A stretch of 64,000 nucleotides of DNA from Hormiphora californensis (taxonomy: Eukaryota; Animalia; Ctenophora): assembly GCA_020137815.1 (NCBI GenBank), contig CM035352.1, forward strand, positions 8,308,001-8,372,000, in the 5' to 3' direction. The position numbers and the translations under genes are program-made. Below the pieces are notes generated by a model. The model worked only from the letters and a program-made list of their open reading frames with translations, ran no database searches and was not told the DNA's origin. Shown here in pieces: positions 3,393 to 28,386 of this stretch (the stretch's first letter is position 1; each line of letters begins with the position of its first letter).

Positions 3393-4262
3393 TAGAACTA
3401 TATAGATAGCCTTATAAAATATAAAACGTATAAAATCCATATAATAATTTCCAAAATGTTAGTCCGATAATTGTTTTCTCCCTACTCCTCCTACAGTTTT
3501 TGAGCTAGACCCCTGAAAATTTGTACACTGGTACTTTGGACCAAGGCGGATGTAAGTACGGGCTCAGATTTTTGATCCGATCTTTACAGCAGTGACGTCA
3601 CGGGGTGACGTCATTGCGACAAAAAGACTTACATTTTTCAAACGCTTCTAAGACCCTGAAAACGGCTCTAAATCAAAAAACTAACGCAATAGTGGGGAAA
3701 GAGAATCGTTTGAACTTCATTTTACTTCATAGCGATTTCCCGTAACTCAATGTTTAAGGGTCGTAAATCGCGTCGGGAAAGTTAAAAATGCCAAAAATGC
3801 GATATTTTTCACCGTAGCCACCCAAAATCTTATCCAATCGATATGAAACTTGGTCGGTATGTGAATTTTAATGTCCTTTGGCCAGGGGTTCCCGGAAAAC
3901 GGATTGGCAAGATGAGAACTGACCGGAGTTCTTATAATTCTAAATTCATGAATTTGGAATTTTTCGTCGACTTTTTTTGGCGACATAAAACGCGAGGAAA
4001 TTTTCAATGAATTTTAAAATTTTACACTGCGCGCGTAATTCTAGGTTCCGCGCGCGGCGTAAAAAAGCAGCGCTTTTTTGGAAAAATTCGCGCGTTACAG
4101 TAAATGATTTACCAATTACCATTTACCAGGTCACGGGTTCCCAGCAAACGGGTACTCTAGTAGTGATTAAAGTTAATTAATTAAATTAAATTGAGATTAA
4201 AGTGATAAGATAAGAATAAATTAAAGTGTGATTAAAGTGATAAGAGAAGAATAAGTTAAAGA

Positions 4263-5968: not shown

Positions 5969-8900
5969 CTAAGATTGTTCGCTACCAACACTTGAGGTAC
6001 CATCAACGGTACGATCTATCCGAACTAGCTCTGTCACAGTTTTTGTTTGAGTGCGGGACATCCTACCATCGACATGGGAGGTGAAATTGGTTCTGCTGTT
6101 ATACGCATCAAACATCCGCTTCTTTGCCGCGTAAAACAGGTCACTGTTGTAGATTAGGGGATTTAGAACACTGTTAATGGGGGTCAGGAGGATGGAACAA
6201 AACTCGTAGAGGTCGGTAGCATCAATGAAGCTGTGGTAATGCAGCCACGAGATGATGATGAAGGGGACCCAAGTTGAGAAATCCGTTGCTACAATGAGGG
6301 TAACTTTCCTCTGGAGACGTCTCATGGATGCCCTCTTCTCCAGATTACCGTCCACACCACACTCTTTTGACGTTTTGTGGGTGTGATAGTAGATCAACCC
6401 GTAGCAAACTGCAATGATGATAAGAAACACCATATTCATGAAGAGGACGAGGACTGAAAAGAGGGACTGTGTGTCAGCATGTCGGACAAAATACTTGAAT
6501 AGACACACACCATGGTTACCATAGAATCCCATACTCTTAACCTCTTGCTTGAAAGTAGATTCCAGTAAGCCCCGCCAAAACACAAACTGTGTTATTAAAT
6601 GCAGTATCATTTTTATCAGTAGTAGATGCCCTCAAACAATGCCTTCAACCCCTCCTTATTGGTAGTTGTCCGTAATCACGGCGTTGTCCTCTATGTAGAG
6701 TACCGTTAACAAAATAGTCCTCAAACTGCTGACTGAAACATGGGAATCGTAGCAACCTAGCAGGGAGAAGGAGATCAAGCCCAGGGCCATGAAACCCAGA
6801 CCTATTCTCATGTTCTTCGTGACCTCGGTAAAGGCCAACATGGTCTTCAGCGAAATCAGTCGGAATACCGCCAACAGAGTCATAGATTGAAGGGAAAGCT
6901 GGCTGCCAAATGTAGAGATGCACGCCTATAAAGGAGCATGTGGAGCTGCATAACCAGTTTTGCCTTTCTTTACAATATTTCTCCTTATAGGATTGGTCGT
7001 AAATTACCACCAGTAACATGTATATCCCGACAGCGAAGTCACCCACAGACACCAACGCCACTAAAATGTCATTGGAAAGCCTGCTTAGTGACATGTTCTT
7101 GTTGACTGAGTGGAAAAAGTGTCCGATTGAAATAGAGGATAGAAGTAGAGAGAAGAAGGCAATTAAGGAAGCGATGTATCTGTAAGCAGGGGTTTCAATG
7201 AGCCGGAATGTAATTTTGTCCCTACACTGCTCACCACACTCGTCGTTCTTGCTAGTACAATCAAATCGCCCGTCACAAATGGCAGTTTTTCGGGCCATAT
7301 CAGTGATATCACTACACGTCTGGTCGTCATCACAGCAGAAGTAGTTATTACAGTTGTTTTCATCTTCAGAGTTTTGACAGTCTTCTATATAGTCGCACAC
7401 CTTTGTTGAACTCACTGCATAAGTCTCATTTTCGCCGTTACACGAGAAAACCGTTTGAAAGTTATCCCCTGATTCGTTGTACAAAAGGTATGACATACCT
7501 TTGCTGTCAGTTGAGGATGCCCACACTATTTCATAATCATCCGTGTAACCTTCAAGAGCAGTCCCGTTAAAAAACGGAGTCAGACGTAGCTTGTCCAGTC
7601 CTTCACATAGGTCCTTGTTTACTGCTATTATCAGTGCAGTCCCAGAGAGGGTTGAGCAACTATCATTCTCCTTTTTAACGAGGTGCAGACGGTGTATGAC
7701 ACCTCCGAACATTTCCATCTCCACTACAGAACAGTTGACGTGCTGCAAACCGGGAAGACAAGGTGGAACGAAGTAGTCGTTAGACTTGGAAAGAATCCCA
7801 GCGAGTGGCTCATTGTTTGTTGAACAAATAGATTCCTCCGCCCGGTTTGAAGAGTCAGATCCCACTGGGCAATCAACATGCCCATCACAAAGATGTGATT
7901 TAGGAATATAATATTCCTTCTTCTCTGTACCAGTAACGTTTGGACAGCGGATAAACCCATCTAATAATGTCTCATCTGTGGGGTTGTCCCGTTCTAACCG
8001 TGCGTAGTTTATTATTGTGCCATTCCGGTAATCAAGGCACGATTCATCCTCCCCACTGTCGCAGTGCACGATTCCGTCACACAAATACCTATCGTCAATA
8101 GTGACCATCACATCATCAACCTTACACTTCAACTCTTTATCACCGTGTGTGGGACAGTCCAGAAATGTTCTCCAGGCTTCGTCACAATAGACGTTTTCAC
8201 CATAGTTGAATTCGTCACACCTTTGAAACTCGTATACCGTTTTGCTGAAATTATTTTTTTTTAACTTTTCCAATTATCATAGTGAAATTTTAAAGAATAA
8301 ACGTTTGTAGATAGAAAATAATATTTTTGTATGAAGGTTGTTGGTGCATGTCTCCTCACTTACGTTTTTCCTTTTAAAGTGCACGTGCTGGTTGCAACAG
8401 ATGAGTCGTTACACAGACTGTCGGGTATTGTGTAGTCGTCCACGTCAGGACAGAGGGATTGAGCTTGACAGTAGTAATACGGTGGTAGCCACCTTGTATA
8501 GTTACCGCTGAAATTGTTTTGAGATTTAATTGTGCTGCAAAGCTCCTTGATCTTTCTCTTACTGTCACTACACGATCAAGACGCTAACGATTGCAATAAC
8601 CCACGTTGTAAGCGATCCACTGCATTCGTCAACCATATTCCGGTCGGCAAGAAAAGCAGGTGTCTCATGGCAGCCATACTCATCCTCGAGATAGTACAAA
8701 TTCATAGTTCCATTCATCTTTTTGATAGATACTTCAGTGTAAGAGTCAGTGCAATCTACCTCCCGGTTACAAGTTGAACTTTCGTCCACTTCACGTCCTG
8801 CGTCGTCTTGACAGGTAAACCCTTGTTCGGTGAGTGTGCTGGAACTGCAACCACTTTCGTCCTCACACCCCCCACAGGTGCACTGAAATTATTAAATTGC

Positions 8901-11900
8901 GTCAGAGAAAGAATCAGGACTGTCAGGACCTTCAAATCTCAAACAAGAATGGAAACGACACTGTTAGACGACAGACGTCACTAACAATAATAATTGTTAG
9001 TGAAAACACAAAAAATAAGTATGTTCTGTTCTTACCACGCCATCGCACATCAGATCTGACCACACGGCAATACGCGTACCATATTGGTCAACACAGATTA
9101 CTGTATCAAGTTTATTGACTCCCAGGGTCGTATTCTGTATCTAAAGGATTGTGGGGATAAGATTTGATAAGACATCCTTTAGATTAACGGATTTTGGATA
9201 GTCAATCAAGTTGTGACGGTATTAATTACTAAAGTCTGATTTTTTAAAAGTTGTCGCCTTCAAAAATCTGACTATACCATACTCACAGTGTTTATAAGGG
9301 GGCACCCACAGGCTTGATAGTTATATGGGTCATCAGGACACTTGTTATCAAACACGCACAACCCTGCGTTAGTTGAGGAGAGTCTGTAGGTATGCTCCCC
9401 AGAGGGACACAAATAAACCTGGTCTAAATTCTTCTCAAACACGCACGTAGTTGTGTTTGTCACCAGTAGACCAGTGCTGCTCAAGGTGTTTCGGGTTTCC
9501 ACTCCTGAACTTATTGCTGAAAAAATCATGTGGTTACCAAGTCACCCATTTGTAAAGCTAACCTCTGTGAGCTCACGCCCACTGGAGCGCTCGCGCAGAG
9601 GTTTAATATCATAACCAAGTTATAACTTGACTTTCAAAGTTGGATTGTCATACTTAGCTGTTTGATATCGATCTCATTTGAATAAATTATCTCTTTATCG
9701 TTCCCTCTTCTTCCCTCGACCACCAAAGTTAGATTTCCTGTTTCTGTTTTCCCGATTTCGTTCCACTCCATCGTGGTTGAGTTTGTCATTGCTGAAAGAT
9801 CACATGTTAATGAGGGCCAACCAATCAGCCATAGAAAGACACAAATAGTAATTAACAGCAGGCTGCAGGGGACACCCTTTAATACCACGCGACAGTCACC
9901 AATCACACACGGATCTTCATTTTCTCTAGAATTTTCTCTAGAACCAAGAACTTACCTGTATCTGATTTACAGCTAGGAACAGAGCAATACTCCCACTCCT
10001 TTTCACCGACATAGCACCATGCTCTGTCCTTCCCCCATGGTCCCTTTATAGCTGAGTTTCGACAGTAGTTGCTGTGACCCGGATAGAATGGTGAACCACT
10101 CTTCCATTTTTCACACTGTCTCCCATTTTCTGTCACACTGATAACTCCTTCATAGTCGTCTTGTTTCGCGTTCTCCGCACAAACTAGACGGATATTATGT
10201 GCTATGCTTTATAATTTGGATAAAGTACCGGATTATAATTTAAATAATACCAGATTTTCGCTAGGAATTCTGCATCCCATCAAAAGGCCTGCACTGAGAT
10301 GTGCAGTGTGCCAATCCTGATTGGATGACCAGGGATGTCTGTTCCTACAAAAAGAAACGACACATAACTCCTATATTAACTAAAAACATCAATTTTGTTG
10401 GTTGATAGATTGACAACGGTTGTCAGCTGAGTATTTCTTACCGTAAGAGAAGTCGTTGCATAAGCTGGTTATATCACACTTTCCGTCACTGAAACTGGTG
10501 GCGCTAAACATGAAGCTACCATTTGCATTACGGGCGGTAAATGTCACGGGACAAACAGGACTTGAGCCGTACTGAGGAACCCTGCAATAGCTGAAAGAAA
10601 AATATGTAATAATATAATGTTTTAATATAAACTGCCTAGTCAGGACAGGGCCAGAATAACAGACAAGCTGACTATAAGACTTTCCTACGTCAGAGGATCC
10701 ATTATTCAACAAATGGATTTACTATGGATTTATTATGGATTTACTATGGATTTACTATGGATTTATTATGGATTTACTATGGATTTATTATGGATTTACT
10801 ATGGATTTATTATGGATTTATTATGGATTTATTATGAATTTATTATGAATTTATTATGGATTTATTACGGATTTATTATGGATTTATTATGGATTTATTA
10901 TTCCATTGGAATAATAAACCCTACAACATCATACTTTGCTCCGACATCATCGATAAATCCCCAGCTACTACTTTTAGCTCTTTCTGCCTCATCAGTATTC
11001 CAGTTTGAGCATTCGATGCCGGATGAAGTGTTATCAGCGGTTCCACGGTAGTAAAACGCTTTTGTCTTGCTACATTCCAGATCTGAACAATTACTTTTTA
11101 CATGTGTGTCTTATAAGACACACATGTGTCTTGTAATTAATGTTCAAACGCAAACTGTGTCTTGTTTTGTTCAAACCCGGGACGTGGTGAAACAGGATTG
11201 AGAAAGTCATCCCATGTCACGCATACACCTTGGGGCAGTTCACTTACTTGCTACCCCTGGCTTTTCACAACTAGGAACGTTGCAGAAGTTCCATCCGCTT
11301 GCCGTGACACACCATGCATAGTCATCCGAATCAGGGTTCCTACAAAAGTTGTGATCCGCCAAACCGTTGTTTTTGCCTGTCGAGCTAAAAGAAATATGTC
11401 GAGTATCACATTATAAGTTGTGTTTAGCACTAAGTAGTGATATTTTTTTTTGGATCGTCCCCGTGCTAACATTTGTCACTCCCTGTTACACACCATGTAT
11501 CCTGGCCATGTATGTGCCACGGTTTGACAGATGTATTACAGTAACATAGATAATAAAGTCGAATTTAGGCTTGCCGCCTGAGGTGCCTAGTGTCTTCTCT
11601 TACCTATCCCAATAGCTTGATCTCCAATTTGTACAAGGCGTTCCATCGACTGTCACGTTTATGGTTCCTCTATAATCTAACTGTTTTCCGCTCCAGCATG
11701 CTGTATGAAAATTTGGGTAACTTAAGATCTTTAATTAGGTAAAACCATTATAGGGTCAAACAGGGGTCCGGACTTGGCCAAATACGAAGAGTTTACTGTG
11801 TAATATCTTCCTAATATAAATATGGTTAGGGCTATCGTTCGTGTTAGGGTTTGGGCCACATTTTCGAGCTTTCGAACCGATATAAGTTATCGTCCGTTCG

Positions 11901-18627: not shown

Positions 18628-18680
<53 letters not shown>

Positions 18681-18700
18681 ACAGATACTGATAGCGAGAG

Positions 18701-18740
<40 letters not shown>

Positions 18741-21700
18741 AGTTGGTCCACCTGCCACCACCTCCTATCGGTTTCCCCCGGGCAACAGGGTCACACGGAG
18801 TACCTTTTCCCCATCCCCTTTCCCCCTTGATCGATTTTCAGGTCCGTGTGGCCGTGGATAAGCGTGGCTGTGTATCAAAAATACGGAAAAAAATCATAAA
18901 ATACAAAAAACACAAAAAGATCTTCTTGGCTAGGCGGCCCACAGTGTATCATCGCCAACTACTATGTTCCTACCCCGCCTTCTCCGGCTTAGGGTTACCC
19001 GTGGAACAGGCACCTTCCAGCCACCTGTGGACCTCCAATGCCCCTTTATCCACTAACCCACTAACCCACCCTGATACTAATCTACTAACCCCCTAACCCT
19101 TTCCATTACCCTGTTCCTTAGAGGATAGTTAACCCCGTTCCAGAGGGGATAGTTTACCCCGCTCCACAGAGGATAGTTACCCTGTGGACCTCCATTGCCC
19201 CTTTATCTACTAAACCACTAACCATCCTGTTACTAATCTGCTAAACCCCTATTCCACTTCATTAATAGGGTCTCGATCCAGTTAGGGTTGTACCCGTTCA
19301 GAGAGAATAGTTTACCCCGGTCCAGAGAGGATAGTTTACCCCGTCCCAGAGAGGACAGTTTACCCCGCTTCACAGAGGATAGTAGCCCCGTTCCAGAGAG
19401 GATAGTTTACCCCGCTTCACAGAGGATAGTAGCCCCGTTCCAGAGAGGATAGTTTACCCCGGTCCAGAGAGGATAGTTTACCCCGCTTCACAGAGGATAG
19501 TTGCCCCGTTCCAGAGAGGATAGTTTACCCCGTCCCAGAGAGGATAGTTTACCCCGCTTTACAGAGGATAGTAGCCCCGTTCCAGAGAGGATAGTTTACC
19601 CCGGTCCAGAGAGGATAGTTTACCCCGCTTCACAGAGGATAGTTGCCCCGTTCCAGAGAGGATAGTTTACCCCGTTCCAGAGAGGATAGTTTACCCCGTC
19701 CCAGAGAGGATAGTTTACCCCGCTTTACAGAGGATAGTTGCCCCGTCCCAGAGAGGATAGTTTACCCCGGTCCAGAGAGGATAGTTTACCCCGCTTCACA
19801 AAGGATAGTTGCCCCGTCCCAGAGAGGATAGTCTACCCCATACCCCGTTCCTGAGAGGATAATTTACCCCGGTCCAGAGAGGATAGTTCACCCCGCTCCA
19901 CAGAGGATAGTTGCCCCGTTCCGGAGAGGGTAGTCTACCCTGTTCCTGAGAGGATAGTCTATCCCGCTCCGGAGAGGATAGTCTACCCCGCTCCAGAGAG
20001 GATAGTTTACCCCGTTCCCGTTGATTATAATGCTTCACACTGGCCCCTGTCCCAGATCCACCATATAGACATATTATATAGATACACACCCGTACGCTGA
20101 AAGTGTCGGTTCGTGCTGAAAAGCTGCAAGGATGGACGGGCAAACCATCTACTAACGGACCAAATGTGGCGGTGGGATTCCGTTACCGCTGCTCACCGGT
20201 GTCAGTGTTAAGACCCCCAAACCCGGCTCTTCTTTCAACAAACCGATGACTATGAATATACAGTGATTGGTTTGAAACTCACCCCCAAAACTTACTCATC
20301 TTATACGACATGAGTACAAACACCCGAAAACCAAGGAAGGTCTGGTCTAAGCAAGAGAACCTAGACTTGGTATACTGCTACTACCGCAGTAACCCAGGCA
20401 CATCCGGATCCTGGAAGAGGCTAGAACGCCTGTGGGAAGATAAAGGATATGACCCACTGCCAGGTAAAAAACTCGCTGGGCAGTTCAGATCTATAGAGAA
20501 ATCTGAACACATGGTAACTCCGACGGAGATGACAGATATGCAAGCCCTAGCAACTGGCCTAAACGTACTCCCGGTAGTGGACCTCACGGTTAATAGCAAC
20601 ACCGCTGGTCCCAGTACAACAACGAATGGGGACACCACCGATCCCCCACCACCACCCCCAACTAGAGCGCCACGAACGAAATGGACCACAGAAATGAACA
20701 CTACGCTCGTGTTCATCCACTGGTACTCACAACCGGAAATAAGAGGAGTGTGGAATCGAGTGGAGGAGAGATGGTTAAAGACAACCTACCCTTCCAAGAC
20801 TGATACCCAGCTCAGATCCCAAATGAATTCTATAACTCATACGGGACTACTTTCACCACAAAGGCTCATGGAAATCAGAGAAGCGGCCACATCTGAACGT
20901 GAGAACGACGACGCGGCTCGGCAGGCTGAGCCAGAGGACAATCCACCTCCAGAACCCGTTGCACCTACAACCTCAGCGGACAATGAAGAGCCAGCACCTA
21001 ACCCAGAAATCAGGGAGCAGTTTAAGAAGCTCCTTGAGGAACCGAGCGCCATCAAAGTCACTGACCTGAGGCAGGTCCCATGGGGAAAACTACGTGTGGC
21101 AATCGACCGACTTAGTCCGGTCATCAGATCGTTTGAAGTCCCAGACCTCACCACATTGAACACCCTCCTGATGGTGGTAGCCCATATTGTCCGGGAACAA
21201 ATGGGTATAAAGCCACCAAGTGAAACCACTAGCAACTCCCCCGGAAGGAACAAACAACCGATGTGGCTGCGACGACTCGAGGAGAGTGTCGCCAAACTTC
21301 GCGCAGACCTATCCAGGCTGACCGAAATGAGCAGAGGAGCCACTCAAAAGTTCCAAACTATAGACACTATCTATAGAAGATACCCGCTGCTGCCCAAAAA
21401 GGGCTATAAACAAGTAATAGAGGAGGTCAAGCAGCGGCTGCTGGCCAAGGCCGGGAAGATTAAGCGATATAAGAAGAAGCAGCAGAGGTTTAAAGACAAT
21501 AACCTATTCCAGAACAACCAACGTGATTTCTACAGGAAACTGGAGAAACGAGGATCACCCCCCACGCCACTCGAAACCACAGCGGAAGATCAAACAAGGA
21601 CCATGAACTTCTGGAAGAACATATGGGAAAACGAAACCGGCCACAACACCGAAGCAGAATGGTTAGATGGCGTCCAAGGAAACTTCGAGACGATCACCCA

Positions 21701-24359
21701 ACAAGAGGACTTCCAGATCAGCCCAGAAAGAGTTGCATCCCGAGTGAAAGGAATGACCAACTGGTCATCTCCAGGAATAGACGGGCTCCACGCCTTCTGG
21801 ATCAAACACACCACCTGCCTCCACGGAAGGATAGCTGAGCTACTCAACGGAAGCCTCACTTCAAGCCAGATCCCAGATTGGATGACTGAAGGTAGAACAT
21901 ACCTCCTGATCAAGGACCCCAAGAAGGGAATGTCCAACCCGGGGAATTTTAGACCCATTACCTGTCTTCCAAACCTCTGGAAATTGTATACAGGAATCTT
22001 ATCGGAGGATATCTACCAACACCTGGATGTAAATAGTCTCTTCCCTGAGGAGCAGAAGGGGTGCCGCAAGAAGAGTAGAGGATGTAAAGAACAGCTAGCA
22101 ATCGACAAACTAATCCTACGTCATTGCAAACGCAACAAATCCTCTCTACACATGGCCTTCATCGACTACCAAAAGGCATACGACTCCATCCCCCACTCTT
22201 GGATCCTGAAATCTATGGAGATGTGCAAGATAAACCCCCAGATAATTAGACTGTTCGAGGCATCGTTCCAACAATGTGTAGTTAATATAGTACAGTCAGG
22301 ATCATCGTTAGGTAAAGTACACATAAAGAGAGGCCTCTTCCAAGGAGACGCTATCTCTCCGATACACTTCATTATAGGACTGATCCCCCTTTCCCTACTA
22401 CTAACCGCCGAAGGAAGAGGCTACACCATATCCGAACCAGATGCACAAGAGGAAGGTGAAGATATCACCATTAACCATCGGCTCTATATGGACGACTTGA
22501 AACTGTACGCAAGTTCGAGAGGAGACCTCCAACATCTCTTGGAAATCACTGAGAAATTCAGCACCGACATCAACATGTCTTTTGGTATAGCTAAATGTGG
22601 ATCACTAGACATCGTTGACGGGGTCAGACAACACATGCAGGGAATTGAACTACCAAGTGGGAACACAATCCCGGAAGTGGAAGACGGTGGTTATAAATAC
22701 CTCGGCATCCTGGAGGTTGACGTTATCCTGCACCAAGAGATGAAGACCAAGGTTAAAACCGAATACGTCAGAAGAGTCAAAAGACTGCTATCTTCGAGCC
22801 TGCACGGCAAGAACCTTGCCACTGCAATCAACACGTGGGCGATACCAGTGATCCGCTACGGCGCTGGGATACTAGACTGGACCACTACTGATGCCAAAGG
22901 ATTAGACATGATTACTAGGAAGATCCTGAGAAGAGGTTTCCTCAAGAGTAACAGCGACATTGATCGACTGTATGTAAGCAGGAAGCTGGGAGGAAGAGGT
23001 CTCCAACGGATTGAAGACGTCATTGTGAAGGAGGAAATAGGACTTGTATCATTCTTCAGCAACTCCACAGACACTAAGATACGTGCACTTCACACAGCAA
23101 TGGTGAAAGAAGATATGCTGAACAAACCCCCAGAGAATGCAGAAGCCCTCAAAGAAAGACTGGAAGGGCAACTGATAGATAACTGGAAGGGTAAGCCACT
23201 TCATGGAAGATTTCTGAAGCAGCTAGAAGAAGGGGGTTGCGACCCTGATGCGACTTGGGCTTGGCTCAACAAGGAGAGCCTCAGCAGATACACCGAAGCC
23301 GATGTGTTTGCCGCCCAAGATCAAGCCATTCGCACAAACTGGATACAAGCTGCTATAGAAAAACAACAAGGAGTGTCCGAGAAATGCCGTATCTGCAACC
23401 AACACAATGAGTCTGTGGAGCACATCCTAAACGGGTGCCAAAAGCTTGCCAATGGAGACTATAAACTGCGTCACGATCGAGTAGCTGCTGCACTACACTG
23501 GGGAGTGTGCAGAGACCGTGGATTCCCCGCTGAGTCCAAGTGTTACAACCACTACGCAGACAAAGTGCTAGAAAACGATGACTATAAGATACTCTGGGAT
23601 TTTCTCATACAAACAGACAACCCCATTGAGGCCTGCAAGCCCGACTTAGTTCTTGTGGACAAACGGAAAAAAGAGGCACTCCTCATTGATGTTGCCGTAC
23701 CGAAAGACCGGTTAGTCTCAGACAGGGAGGTGGAGAAGATCGAGAAGTACCAAGAACTACGGAGAGAGATCACGAGAATTTGGGAGCTCAAAAAGGCCAC
23801 GGTCATTCCCATCGTGATTGGAGCTCTTGGCGGAGTTAGCCCCCGACTGGAGAAGTACTTGCAGGCTATAACCCGGCAAATCTACCCCTCACAGCTCCAA
23901 AAATCAGTCCTCTTCAACTCGATGAACACGCTCCGGAAAGTTCTCGACATGTAATCAGCCTCCGGATACCCCATGGATTGCCCCCCCCCCCCCATTTTGT
24001 AATTTCACCCGTTCCTGCTTGTTTTTAGGCTGCCTTAGATCCCGTTCCAGAAATTTGCTTCTTCGGCTCCTGATAGGTTGAATCTTCTTAGTCTCCGTTG
24101 CAGAAGGTTGGGCTTCTTTCCAGATAGTTTAGAAGGTCTTGTGCTCCGTCACCATGAGCTTTATTCCCCCTTGTTTATTTTTATCCTTACTTTACCCCAT
24201 ATGTACATTGTTCAACATACCCTTATGTACATTGTTCTACCTACCTTTACTCCGCAGGCCCTCCGGGCCCTCAGATCCAACAGGATCCGGGCTCGGGGGA
24301 TTTAACCCTGCTCTCGCACGGGGCCTTACGGCCCCGTGTGGGAGTGGTGCGTGTAGTGG

Positions 24360-24405
<46 letters not shown>

Positions 24406-24739
24406 AGAGAGAAGAGGGAGAGTTACAGATAGTAATATTGTGATCACAACCGCAAAGCCACAAGTCAAAGATTTGTTGGCCTACTACTGAATAATATACA
24501 CGGTATATGAGAGACACCCTGTTTATGCCTTTATTCCATGTGGAGACACAGCCAGTGGTATTTTGAGCACGTATACACGTGTGTGTGTCTGTTTAGAGCT
24601 GCGACGGGTTGGATGAAATTCTTAGGAGAAGTAGACCAAAGTGCAGCAGAGCTGCTTATGTGTGAAATTGTCAGCAAATATTAGCAAGAAATAACACATA
24701 CATATTCATATATTGCCTTCCTCTCCATCTCCATCTCCA

Positions 24740-26119: not shown

Positions 26120-28386
26120 TCTACACCACCATTATTATATCTAGCTTGCGATTGAGCACGGCGTGCCTGGTGAAATTTTAACACGACCTAGCATGCAACG
26201 GGAAACCACCACTTGTACGTGGTAGCTGAGGGTCTACAGAATGGCGCTACGGTGCGGGAAAAAAAAGTCCATGCCCTAAAATCGTTTTTTTTTTACGTTT
26301 ATTTGATTTGGGTCAAAATTGGCTATATTAAACGTGGTCCCGAAAAATCCATAATGACTTAGCACACGAAATATGTCACCCCCACCTATTTTTGCACGTA
26401 GAATCGATTGCCGTTGAAGTCGAATCTCTAAAATGACTGTAAAATGGTCAAAAGTTGATTTTTTACCATTTTTTGGAGGTTTTTGGCCCCTAAACCATTG
26501 AAAACGTTGAGATAGGAATTTGAAACTAGTGCCAATCGTTAAAATGGTCATTTTTCTACCAAGAACCAAGTTTTCGTGTATATCAGATTTATGGTTAGAT
26601 TTGGGCAAATTGTTGAAATCTGCCAAGTAGGAGAACCGTAACTTGATTTTCTTGTTTTTTGGATTTTGGCATTTTTGACAAACTTCTGATTGAAATGGTC
26701 AATCGGGACCATGCTTAAGTTTTTTATGGGACAATTTTCGACTAAAATCCAAGATTTCATACCAATCCAATAACAGATCGTTGATTTATAGAAAATTTAA
26801 GTAGGCAAAACGGTGAAAATAAGCAAGAAAAGTTGTCATTTTCACCGTTTTGCCTACTTAAATTTTCTATAAATCAACGATCTGTTATTGGATTGGTATG
26901 AAATCTTGGATTTTAGTCGAAAATTGTCCCATAAACAACTTAAGCATGGTCCCGATTGACCATTTCAATCAGAAGTTTGTCAAAAATGCCAAAATCCAAA
27001 AAACAAGAAAATCAAGTTACGGTTCTCCTACTTGGCAGATTTCAACAATTTGCCCAAATCTAACCATAAATCTGATATACACGAAAACTTGGTTCTTGGT
27101 AGAAAAATGACCATTTTAACGATTGGCACTAGTTTCAAATTCCTATCTCAACGTTTTCAATGGTTTAGGGGCCAAAAACCTCCAAAAAATGGTAAAAAAT
27201 CAACTTTTGACCATTTTACAGTCATTTTAGAGATTCGACTTCAACGGCAATCGATTCTACGTGCAAAAATAGGTGGGGGTGACATATTTCGTGTGCTAAG
27301 TCATTATGGATTTTTCGGGACCACGTTTAATATAGCCAATTTTGACCCAAATCAAATAAAAGTAAAAAAAACGATTTTAGGGCATGGACTTTTTTTTCCC
27401 GCACCGTAGCGCCATTCTGTAGACCCTCAGCTACCACGTACAAGTGGTGGTTTCCCGTTGCATGCTAGGTCGTGTTAAAATTTCACCAGGCACGCCGTGT
27501 GAGCCTTAACTAGTATAGCTAAAGTTACTGAGAAGAATTAAGTTTTACGTTCTAGAAGTATGATTTCATATTCTTTCACCGAAGACAGACCCCCGACAGA
27601 CAGAAGACGATCTGGTGGTGATTCCGAAAGGATGATCCGGCACTATGCTGTCTCGGCGAGACTTGGCTGTGTGACTGTTTACAGTCCCAGATGAGTGGTC
27701 CAAACCAAACCAAACCAAAACTTGAAACACTTTTTCTTGCGTGTTTTTTGAAAACGAAATTGGTGTGGCGCGCATTTTTTTGCGCGTACCACGCTAGTGT
27801 CTCCCACTAGAGTACCTTGTGGTGTTACCATCCCTGTTACTATGGTAACACTATCATTCCTTCCTAGATATCAAAGGTCGAGGGGTTCCTATTCTGATTT
27901 ACAGTAACAAAATGGACATCAGGGATTCCCTATCCCCATCCCAGGTAAGAGCAACAGAGATCTGCGAAACCCTCACAGAGCGCAAAATGCAGTTTGCATC
28001 ACACAAGTATTATGGATAATTTCTTTGATATTAAAGAATGGTGTTTAAATCAGTTATAGGTTATACACGAGAGCGGCTATTACATGTGATAATTGTTTAA
28101 GATTTTAAAACAGCTGTACGGTATAATTTTTTATTTACCAGGTATCCCTAAAGCTGGAGTTGGACCAAATCAGAAATAAACCGTGGCAAATATTGTAAGT
28201 CTAAAACAGTCCACCTCATTATTTATTCACCTCCAATATGTTCCATATAATGTCTCTCTATCAACCCCGCCGTTTCATATTGTACAATGTTTCAGTGGTA
28301 GCAACGCTTTATCTGGCGAGGGGCTGGGTGAGGGAGTTAGTTGGCTGGCTAGCCAGATCAGACAACAGAGAACCAAAAGAAGTTGA
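17057..28386 (+). CDS. ARL6: ADP-ribosylation factor-like 6 (BBS3); exons 17057-17155, 17647-17708, 18116-18184, 25231-25325, 27868-27944, 28142-28194, 28296-28386
   Basis: Spliced product [87 protein letters not shown]; all junctions GT-AG and phase-compatible. Confidence 0.95.
18628..18735. repeat. (GA)n microsatellite, left flank of retrotransposon
   Basis: direct observation. Confidence 0.95.
18736..18868 (+). ncRNA. HDV-like ribozyme fold at element 5' end
   Basis: P1 GGGGGAG/TTCCCCC, P2 GCCAC/GTGGC, P3 ACC/GGT, L3 TCCTATC, J1/4 GGG, P4 GGTCACACGGA/TCCGTGTGGCC, J4/2 TGGATAAG, all in HDV order. Confidence 0.75.
19290..20015 (+). repeat. 23-24-bp tandem repeat array in retrotransposon 5' UTR
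   Basis: about 30 units of tttaccccgNtccagagaggatag with recurring variants. Confidence 0.95.
20310..23954 (+). CDS. retrotransposon polyprotein: two Myb-like repeats, reverse transcriptase, CCHC zinc knuckle, PD-(D/E)xK restriction-like endonuclease
   Basis: 1214-aa open frame; [64 protein letters not shown]. Confidence 0.97.
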   Translation: MSTNTRKPRKVWSKQENLDLVYCYYRSNPGTSGSWKRLERLWEDKGYDPLPGKKLAGQFRSIEKSEHMVTPTEMTDMQALATGLNVLPVVDLTVNSNTAGPSTTTNGDTTDPPPPPPTRAPRTKWTTEMNTTLVFIHWYSQPEIRGVWNRVEERWLKTTYPSKTDTQLRSQMNSITHTGLLSPQRLMEIREAATSERENDDAARQAEPEDNPPPEPVAPTTSADNEEPAPNPEIREQFKKLLEEPSAIKVTDLRQVPWGKLRVAIDRLSPVIRSFEVPDLTTLNTLLMVVAHIVREQMGIKPPSETTSNSPGRNKQPMWLRRLEESVAKLRADLSRLTEMSRGATQKFQTIDTIYRRYPLLPKKGYKQVIEEVKQRLLAKAGKIKRYKKKQQRFKDNNLFQNNQRDFYRKLEKRGSPPTPLETTAEDQTRTMNFWKNIWENETGHNTEAEWLDGVQGNFETITQQEDFQISPERVASRVKGMTNWSSPGIDGLHAFWIKHTTCLHGRIAELLNGSLTSSQIPDWMTEGRTYLLIKDPKKGMSNPGNFRPITCLPNLWKLYTGILSEDIYQHLDVNSLFPEEQKGCRKKSRGCKEQLAIDKLILRHCKRNKSSLHMAFIDYQKAYDSIPHSWILKSMEMCKINPQIIRLFEASFQQCVVNIVQSGSSLGKVHIKRGLFQGDAISPIHFIIGLIPLSLLLTAEGRGYTISEPDAQEEGEDITINHRLYMDDLKLYASSRGDLQHLLEITEKFSTDINMSFGIAKCGSLDIVDGVRQHMQGIELPSGNTIPEVEDGGYKYLGILEVDVILHQEMKTKVKTEYVRRVKRLLSSSLHGKNLATAINTWAIPVIRYGAGILDWTTTDAKGLDMITRKILRRGFLKSNSDIDRLYVSRKLGGRGLQRIEDVIVKEEIGLVSFFSNSTDTKIRALHTAMVKEDMLNKPPENAEALKERLEGQLIDNWKGKPLHGRFLKQLEEGGCDPDATWAWLNKESLSRYTEADVFAAQDQAIRTNWIQAAIEKQQGVSEKCRICNQHNESVEHILNGCQKLANGDYKLRHDRVAAALHWGVCRDRGFPAESKCYNHYADKVLENDDYKILWDFLIQTDNPIEACKPDLVLVDKRKKEALLIDVAVPKDRLVSDREVEKIEKYQELRREITRIWELKKATVIPIVIGALGGVSPRLEKYLQAITRQIYPSQLQKSVLFNSMNTLRKVLDM
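24363..24420. repeat. (GA)n microsatellite, right flank of retrotransposon
   Basis: direct observation. Confidence 0.95.
25375..27809. mobile_element. palindromic MITE whose right arm is split by a ~1.9-kb insertion
   Basis: 25375-25465 mirrors 27721-27809; inner arms 25461-25620 mirror 25643-25807. Confidence 0.8.
26157..27499. mobile_element. foldback non-autonomous DNA transposon, Chapaev-like
   Basis: arms 26157-26820 and 26838-27499 are near-perfect reverse complements; CACGG...CCGTG termini; TGAG 4-bp TSD. Confidence 0.85.

Follow-up and report, generated by a model that had tools for sequence, protein, structure and literature searches.

The 64,000-nucleotide stretch of Hormiphora californensis DNA analysed here (assembly GCA_020137815.1, contig CM035352.1, forward-strand positions 8,308,001 to 8,372,000; hereafter the window) carries a retrotransposon of 5,629 bp at 18736-24364, with (GA)n microsatellite on both flanks. 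Its 5′ end, 18736-18868, can be folded like the self-cleaving ribozyme of hepatitis delta virus (HDV), and position 18858, where HDV has its catalytic cytosine, is an adenine. Two Arf-family exons flank the element on the plus strand and place it within an intron, in sense orientation, which agrees with the original prediction that it is transcribed along with its host gene; the label ARL6 for that gene is our presumption, from the P-loop sequence. Our interpretation, which we hold with a probability of about 0.78, is that 18736-18868 is the 5′ HDV-like head of a young (GA)n retrotransposon with just one open reading frame (ORF), and that the catalytic C was mutated to A in the window copy.

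The element and its 5′ head

All five helices of the HDV fold (P1, P2, P3, P1.1 and P4) can form in the canonical nested double-pseudoknot order, and on re-reading each lay exactly where the original prediction had placed it. P1 is a 7 bp helix (18736-42/18773-79) and P4 an 11 bp stem, each with one G·U among its pairs, and the J4/2 junction reads GTGG-A-TAAGC. The register of P1 can slide by up to 2 nt, with a run of seven Gs (18734-40) facing TTCCCCC, and nucleotide +1 is a G in every possible register. A second GTGGC, at 18848-52 within P4, is an alternative partner for P2. The 43-nt loop of P4 (18800-18842) is pyrimidine-rich, with runs of C and T, and is partly complementary to the purine-rich (GA)n/G-run flank. 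In the minimum free energy (MFE) fold, the 5′ G-run pairs with CCUCC rather than with its P1 partner, so alternative folds may compete with P1.

We estimated how often such a fold arises by chance by running a loose structural descriptor on 100 dinucleotide shuffles. By structure alone it matched about 1.55 times per 128 kb, and the fold taken by itself is not significant; with the J4/2 motif added, the rate fell to 0.04 matches per 128 kb. The real match coincides with the first base of the retrotransposon. Nested MFE folding of the window head recovered P4 and gave an unexceptional z of +0.56, a method that is uninformative for a double pseudoknot.

The likeness to HDV (RF00094) extends to the full order of elements, P1-P2-P3-L3-P3′-P1′-P1.1-J1/4-P4-J4/2-P2′, and to parts of the RF00094 consensus: ACC/GGU around L3, an L3 beginning with UCCU, a GG that follows P1′ and, in sibling copies, GCUAA in J4/2. 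The junction GGGCAACA is also identical in the genomic HDV sequence. Unlike HDV, the element has a much longer P4, a G-C rather than a G·U as its first P1 pair, U rather than G at position 6 of L3 and, in the window copy, A for the catalytic C. A permissive Rfam search returned a partial RF00094 match over P1, L3 and P3, scoring only 15 bits against a threshold of 50.

The coding region has the architecture of the R2 superfamily of restriction-like endonuclease (RLE) elements: a single ORF encodes a reverse transcriptase (RT), then a CCHC motif, then a PD-(D/E)xK endonuclease. Its best relatives among solved structures in the PDB are R2 proteins (1.7e-28), and protein homologues number 794 at E ≤ 1e-10, many at 43-64% identity. 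Pfam reported zf-RVT at 7e-4, below its cut-off, and no N-terminal zinc-finger family was found in the ORF by Pfam at E up to 10 or by eye. Two W-spaced Myb-like stretches are visible, Myb being uncalled by Pfam; like the CCHC and PD..D..K motifs, they were read by eye and are not profile matches. R4/Dong clade members have a Myb/SANT-like domain at their N-terminus, lack zinc fingers and target rDNA or a microsatellite (PMC7998251), and a microsatellite target is what the element has. We infer that it is an R4/Dong-like member of the R2 superfamily, a placement based on architecture and microsatellite target. Anatomy, ORF domains and flanks agree with the earlier proposal of an RLE retrotransposon that adjoins its (GA)n target and starts with an HDV-like fold. 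An array of degenerate tandem repeats, about 900 bp long, occupies the 5′ untranslated region (UTR) between head and ORF. Coordinates are collected in Table 1.

Table 1. Head, remaining element, flanks and host exons, in window coordinates.
Feature	Position	Strand	Reading or support
(GA)n microsatellite, 5′ flank and target	18629..18735	+	ends in G-run merging into P1
P1 5′ strand, GGGGGAG	18736..18742	+	predicted cleavage immediately 5′; register ambiguous over 18734-18736
J1/2	18743..18753	+	GGTCCAC (18745-18751) is exactly reverse-complementary to GTGGACC, the final 7 nt of the element (24358-24364)
P2 5′ strand, GCCAC	18754..18758	+	100% of cells paired; changes one-sided only
P3 5′ strand, ACC	18760..18762	+	invariant
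L3, TCCTATC	18763..18769	+	positions 1 and 6 are U, U; in HDV U, G (cf. PMC3386971)
P1.1, CC (in L3) with GG	18764-65 with 18780-81	+	sequence read
P3 3′ strand, GGT	18770..18772	+	sequence read
P1 3′ strand, TTCCCCC	18773..18779	+	pairing survives T-to-C / C-to-T changes in other copies
J1/4, GGGCAACA	18780..18787	+	GG forms P1.1; at the base of P4, C18786 pairs with G18856 and A18787 with T18855
P4 hairpin	18789..18853	+	11-bp stem 18789-99/18843-53; 43-nt pyrimidine-rich loop
J4/2, G-A-TAAGC	18857..18863	+	18858 is A; catalytic C in other copies
P2 3′ strand, GTGGC	18864..18868	+	sequence read
Tandem repeats in 5′ UTR	19106..20020	+	self-BLAST
Single intact ORF, 1214 aa	20310..23954	+	ORF call
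RT domain	21918-22601	+	RVT_1, 4.5e-25
CCHC motif, aa 1026-1043	23385-23438	+	by eye
RLE motif KPD..D..K, aa 1110-1130	23637-23699	+	by eye
3′ UTR, terminal sequence GTAGTGGACC	23955..24364	+	sequence read
(GA)n, 3′ flank	24365..24420	+	sequence read
Host exon 1, Arf-family (ARL6-like) N-terminus with P-loop	17057..17167	+	Pfam Arf, 4e-7
Later host exon, Arf-family, NKMD motif	27879..28000	+	Pfam Arf, 7e-4, profile positions 114-153

The catalytic position across the family

Heads were counted in the H. californensis assembly (110.69 Mb in 45 contigs, about 13 of them large) by a 200-nt query, a covariance model of the head, an exact count of 19-mers across the catalytic position and a scripted parse of 61 heads. 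The query found at least 40 copies at 91-100% identity, their heads being 0-9% diverged from that of the window copy, and the covariance model found 114 heads; the family size is about 110. Exact 19-mers carried C at the catalytic position in 34 places and A in 2. Among the first 30 heads, 28 read GTGGCTAAGC, and A was present only in the window copy and in C1:9757045, an indel-ridden, generally decayed copy. The parse likewise gave C in 59 of 61 heads and A in two. Every one of about 40 sampled heads of subfamily B (described below) has C, as do both heads of a sister family and the closest sibling of the window copy, C4:8922261, whose ORF is 99.2-99.6% identical to that in the window.

Since C is found in siblings, in both subfamilies and in the sister family, A18858 is derived and specific to the window copy: it is a private mutation, not a family trait. 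A further private difference, T-to-C in the P4 loop, lies near it. The two A-bearing copies have no other variant in common and hence represent independent hits. With other heads diverged by 0-9%, chance is expected to produce one or two hits at any one site, and neutral decay explains A18858 with no need for a selective account.

(GA)n directly precedes 54 of the 61 parsed heads, and the G-run at the junction is 4-10 nt long (mode 7), a range that fits junctions made by microhomology or untemplated addition. Copies also lie head to tail within one (GA)n tract, at C3:103000-110400, C5:8535689 and C5:8541944, in the order of one element's 3′ end, a short (GA)n and the next element's head; this arrangement suggests that elements insert next to each other. 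In one subfamily-B head (C9:58844-59144), a run of about 30 Gs replaces part of J1/4, which might stem from faulty assembly or from expansion of a homopolymer.

Searches beyond the family yielded little. In the genome, the four non-family matches of a generic core pattern were coding or chance sequences without a P1 partner. A strict descriptor missed the sister-family head, which was found by eye once its (GA)n boundary had been located; no recognisable head was found in a third, heavily decayed relative. Additional sister-family candidates on contigs C12 and C4 proved to be a proline-rich coding repeat and low-complexity DNA, and low-scoring covariance-model matches that might have been new lineages were decayed A or B copies. 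A scan of viral contigs gave 5 matches, all due to chance. Among the metagenome matches listed (at least 120), one was a real head and the others were chance, some of them from bacterial contigs of human-gut metagenomes, a set covered by pattern screening only. The real one, on a 1185-nt contig from the marine water column (ENA 'Day-1-50m-contig-22523'), is a same-family head that follows (GA)n and has C at the catalytic position; presumably it comes from sea-water DNA of this animal or of a close relative.

Conservation of the fold in subfamilies and a sister family

The family divides into subfamilies A and B, which are separated by about nine fixed differences in the 133 nt of the head. Five fall in the P4 loop, one at position 4 of L3 (T/A) and one in J4/2 (CTAAG/CTGAG), and the remaining two form a compensatory pair in which A18787-T18855 becomes G-C, lengthening P4 across a G·G mismatch. 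We take the 18787/18855 pair to match A45-U72 of genomic HDV.

Pairing was scored in 10 distinct heads on a covariance-model alignment, which was used because MAFFT misaligned P4 between the element family and the sister family. Partners could pair in 96.2% of cells, versus 32-50% when they were slid against each other. Two-sided changes affected ten pairs (seven of P4, three of P1), a number reached by none of 500 shuffles; those in P1 come partly from decayed copies. Covariation of P1 through P4, which the original prediction had named as part of its test, is seen in P4 and weakly in P1; P2, P3 and P1.1 show none.

A sister family encodes a protein 57-59% identical to that of the element, and no nucleotide similarity between the two was detected upstream of the ORF. 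It too starts directly after (GA)n and a G-run. Its P2 and P3 strands are identical to those of the element family, P1′ is TCCCCTC, the P1.1 GG is followed by TAACA, and J4/2 reads TGG-C-TGAGA; an unrelated 9-10 bp stem stands in the place of P4. The catalytic C in its GGCU(A/G)AG context, the CC/GG of P1.1 and the xAACA junction have all been kept, and the nested fold of this head is exceptional (z = -3.28). Only two sister-family heads exist in the genome. The better copy (head at C8:7406362-7406460, or 3863-3961 of the extracted locus L038) encodes 1146 aa in one ORF, and a second frame (8331-9038) comes next and overlaps it, which suggests a frameshift near the C-terminus; the other copy is decayed, with 31 stops.

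Conservation of the head is out of step with that of the coding region. When 12 sampled loci (L206-L217) were compared with window positions 18736-19105, the first 133 nt were 97-99% identical. Nucleotides 134-370 were 94-99% identical in 11 of the 12, the remaining locus, L210, being at 89.7%, and L213 aligned over only 61% of this segment. The RT region was only about 80% identical in nine copies; L210 and L213 have no comparable RT, and L209 is the sole close sibling. Two of the loci, L206 and L208, are mosaics, with 96% identity in the 5′ part of the ORF and 81% in the RT. A shared head on diverged lineages suggests that recombination or template switching has spread one 5′ head, or that the head as a whole is under very strong constraint.

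Predicted catalysis and competing explanations

By analogy with R2, R4 and Dong (PMC3774820), a read-through transcript would carry the element, and its head would cut this RNA just 5′ of the G-run. The released RNA would begin with the element's first base, and this defined 5′ end would later be copied back into (GA)n. In the window copy, the C-to-A change arose during or after insertion, and self-cleavage of transcripts from this locus would most likely be abolished or greatly slowed, the ORF being left intact. A C-to-A mutant at the catalytic position reportedly keeps weak activity (Perrotta, Shih and Been 1999; Nakano et al. 2000). The C-to-U change abolishes cleavage in silkmoth R2 (PMC3774820) and likewise the activity of the C. 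briggsae ribozyme (PMC13635239). The ribozyme of the window copy is most likely crippled, and the attenuation originally proposed for it survives as a copy-specific loss of the family's catalytic C.

The heads of R4 and Dong self-cleave in vitro at the element 5′ end (PMC3774820), and HDV-like ribozymes on both, as well as the (TAA)n target of Dong, are already described in that paper and in Ruminski et al. 2011, cited there. Like R4 and Dong, the element encodes an RLE in a single ORF, has its putative ribozyme starting at its first base with cleavage predicted at the 5′ junction, and shows variable 5′ junctions; with Dong it also shares a microsatellite target. It differs in targeting (GA)n rather than (TAA)n or rDNA, in having U/U rather than U/G in L3, and in its ctenophore host, and its cleavage is a prediction. 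R2 ribozymes belong to the same superfamily and have the same role in processing co-transcripts (Eickbush and Eickbush 2010; PMC3774820), and dead copies with core mutations are known among them, in sow bug R2 and in a Nasonia clone with a G-to-A change (PMC3774820). Unlike the element, R2 targets 28S rDNA, and its cleavage site is often upstream, in 28S sequence; in R2 ribozymes conservation of the L3 G is high, and that of the catalytic C and four other positions is rigid (PMC3774820). A literature search found no report of HDV-like ribozymes in ctenophores; the two terms co-occur in an R2 survey.

Loop L3 departs from HDV in the family as a whole, a point that the original prediction did not raise. 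The U·G reverse wobble of HDV L3 (U20/G25 in the genomic and U23/G28 in the antigenomic ribozyme) is a signature of HDV-like ribozymes and lies beside the active-site metal (PMC3386971). The family lacks it: L3 is TCCTATC in 24 parsed heads and TCCAATC in 37, with no G and with U/U at positions 1 and 6. The sister family has GCCCAGT, hence G/G, in its better copy and G/U in the decayed one, so that with two heads in all the G/G state comes from a single copy. Of 16 combinations tried in antigenomic HDV, only U/G, C/A, U/U, G/G and U/A were active (PMC3386971). U/U and G/G are thus two of the four substitutions that retain residual activity, variants that, according to the authors, had not been found in nature. 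At somewhat worse than even odds, we suggest that the family, as distinct from the window copy, is a natural, active HDV-like ribozyme in which the L3 U·G is replaced, by U/U in the family and by G/G in its sister.

Several observations weigh against a catalytic head. U/U and G/G slow antigenomic HDV 290-fold and 470-fold, respectively (PMC3386971). HDV-like ribozymes conserve the L3 G to a high degree, its change to A abolished cleavage of the Nasonia R2 clone (PMC3774820), and in the C. briggsae ribozyme G25A causes strong impairment (PMC13635239); catalysis might therefore be slow or absent throughout the family. P1 opens with a G-C pair and not G·U, and Rfam at its gathering score returned no match over the head. 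P2, P3 and P1.1 are invariant or changed on one side only, so that the helices specific to the pseudoknot show conservation alone, and the alignment behind the pair counts was itself fitted to P1, P3 and P4. Precise 5′ ends and the census of junctions would also fit an internal promoter. The head could accordingly be a structural 5′ element (a protein-binding fold, a promoter or a translation element) that resembles or derives from an HDV-like fold and has no catalytic function, in which case the A would be inconsequential; the absence of the L3 G from every family head read, the 94-99% identity of the first 370 nt across lineages whose RTs are about 80% identical, and the lack of covariation in P2, P3 and P1.1 all suit such an element. 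It would leave unexplained why the sister family retains the catalytic C context, P1.1 and the xAACA junction despite an otherwise unalignable 5′ UTR, why the L3 states found are among the few with activity in HDV, and why the heads of R4 and Dong, which are related elements, cleave. We therefore judge a purely structural role unlikely.

The alternatives to a private, neutral loss of the catalytic C concern the A itself. The proposal that the family uses a natural A variant, with adenine as general acid, is compatible with the window copy viewed alone; the census refutes it, C being the base in nearly all parsed heads, across subfamilies A and B, and likewise in the sister family and the metagenome head, and we give it next to no credence. 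The A could also be wrong through an error of sequencing or assembly, or belong to just one allele at a heterozygous position, in a copy that truly has C, which would undercut the loss we describe. The 19-mer around it differs by this base alone from the one found at 34 places, as it would with an error, but the window copy has the nearby T-to-C difference as well, and an ORF divergence of 0.4-0.8% from the sibling leads one to expect real private substitutions; we consider an error or allele improbable. Slightly more doubtful still is the suggestion, also made in the original prediction, that the change spares the host pre-mRNA. Placed in a sense intron, a working ribozyme would cleave the Arf/ARL6-like pre-mRNA; a dead head would then benefit the host and be favoured by selection. 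The position of the element between the two Arf-family exons, and a mutation exactly at the catalytic base with the ORF intact, speak for this account. Yet A occurs in only 2 of the roughly 110 heads, the other being generally decayed, and that number is about what neutral decay would leave at any site.

HDV-like heads on R4 and Dong are already known, and as a private mutation A18858 is nothing out of the ordinary; one dead representative of a known ribozyme type is of little importance and needs no special explanation. Together with its 99%-identical, C-bearing sibling, the window copy makes a natural control pair for the catalytic cytosine. More broadly, ribozyme-headed, microsatellite-specific RLE elements would extend to a (GA)n target and to ctenophores. 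If its heads are active, a family that proliferates without the L3 G could show how dispensable the metal-binding U·G pair is in vivo.

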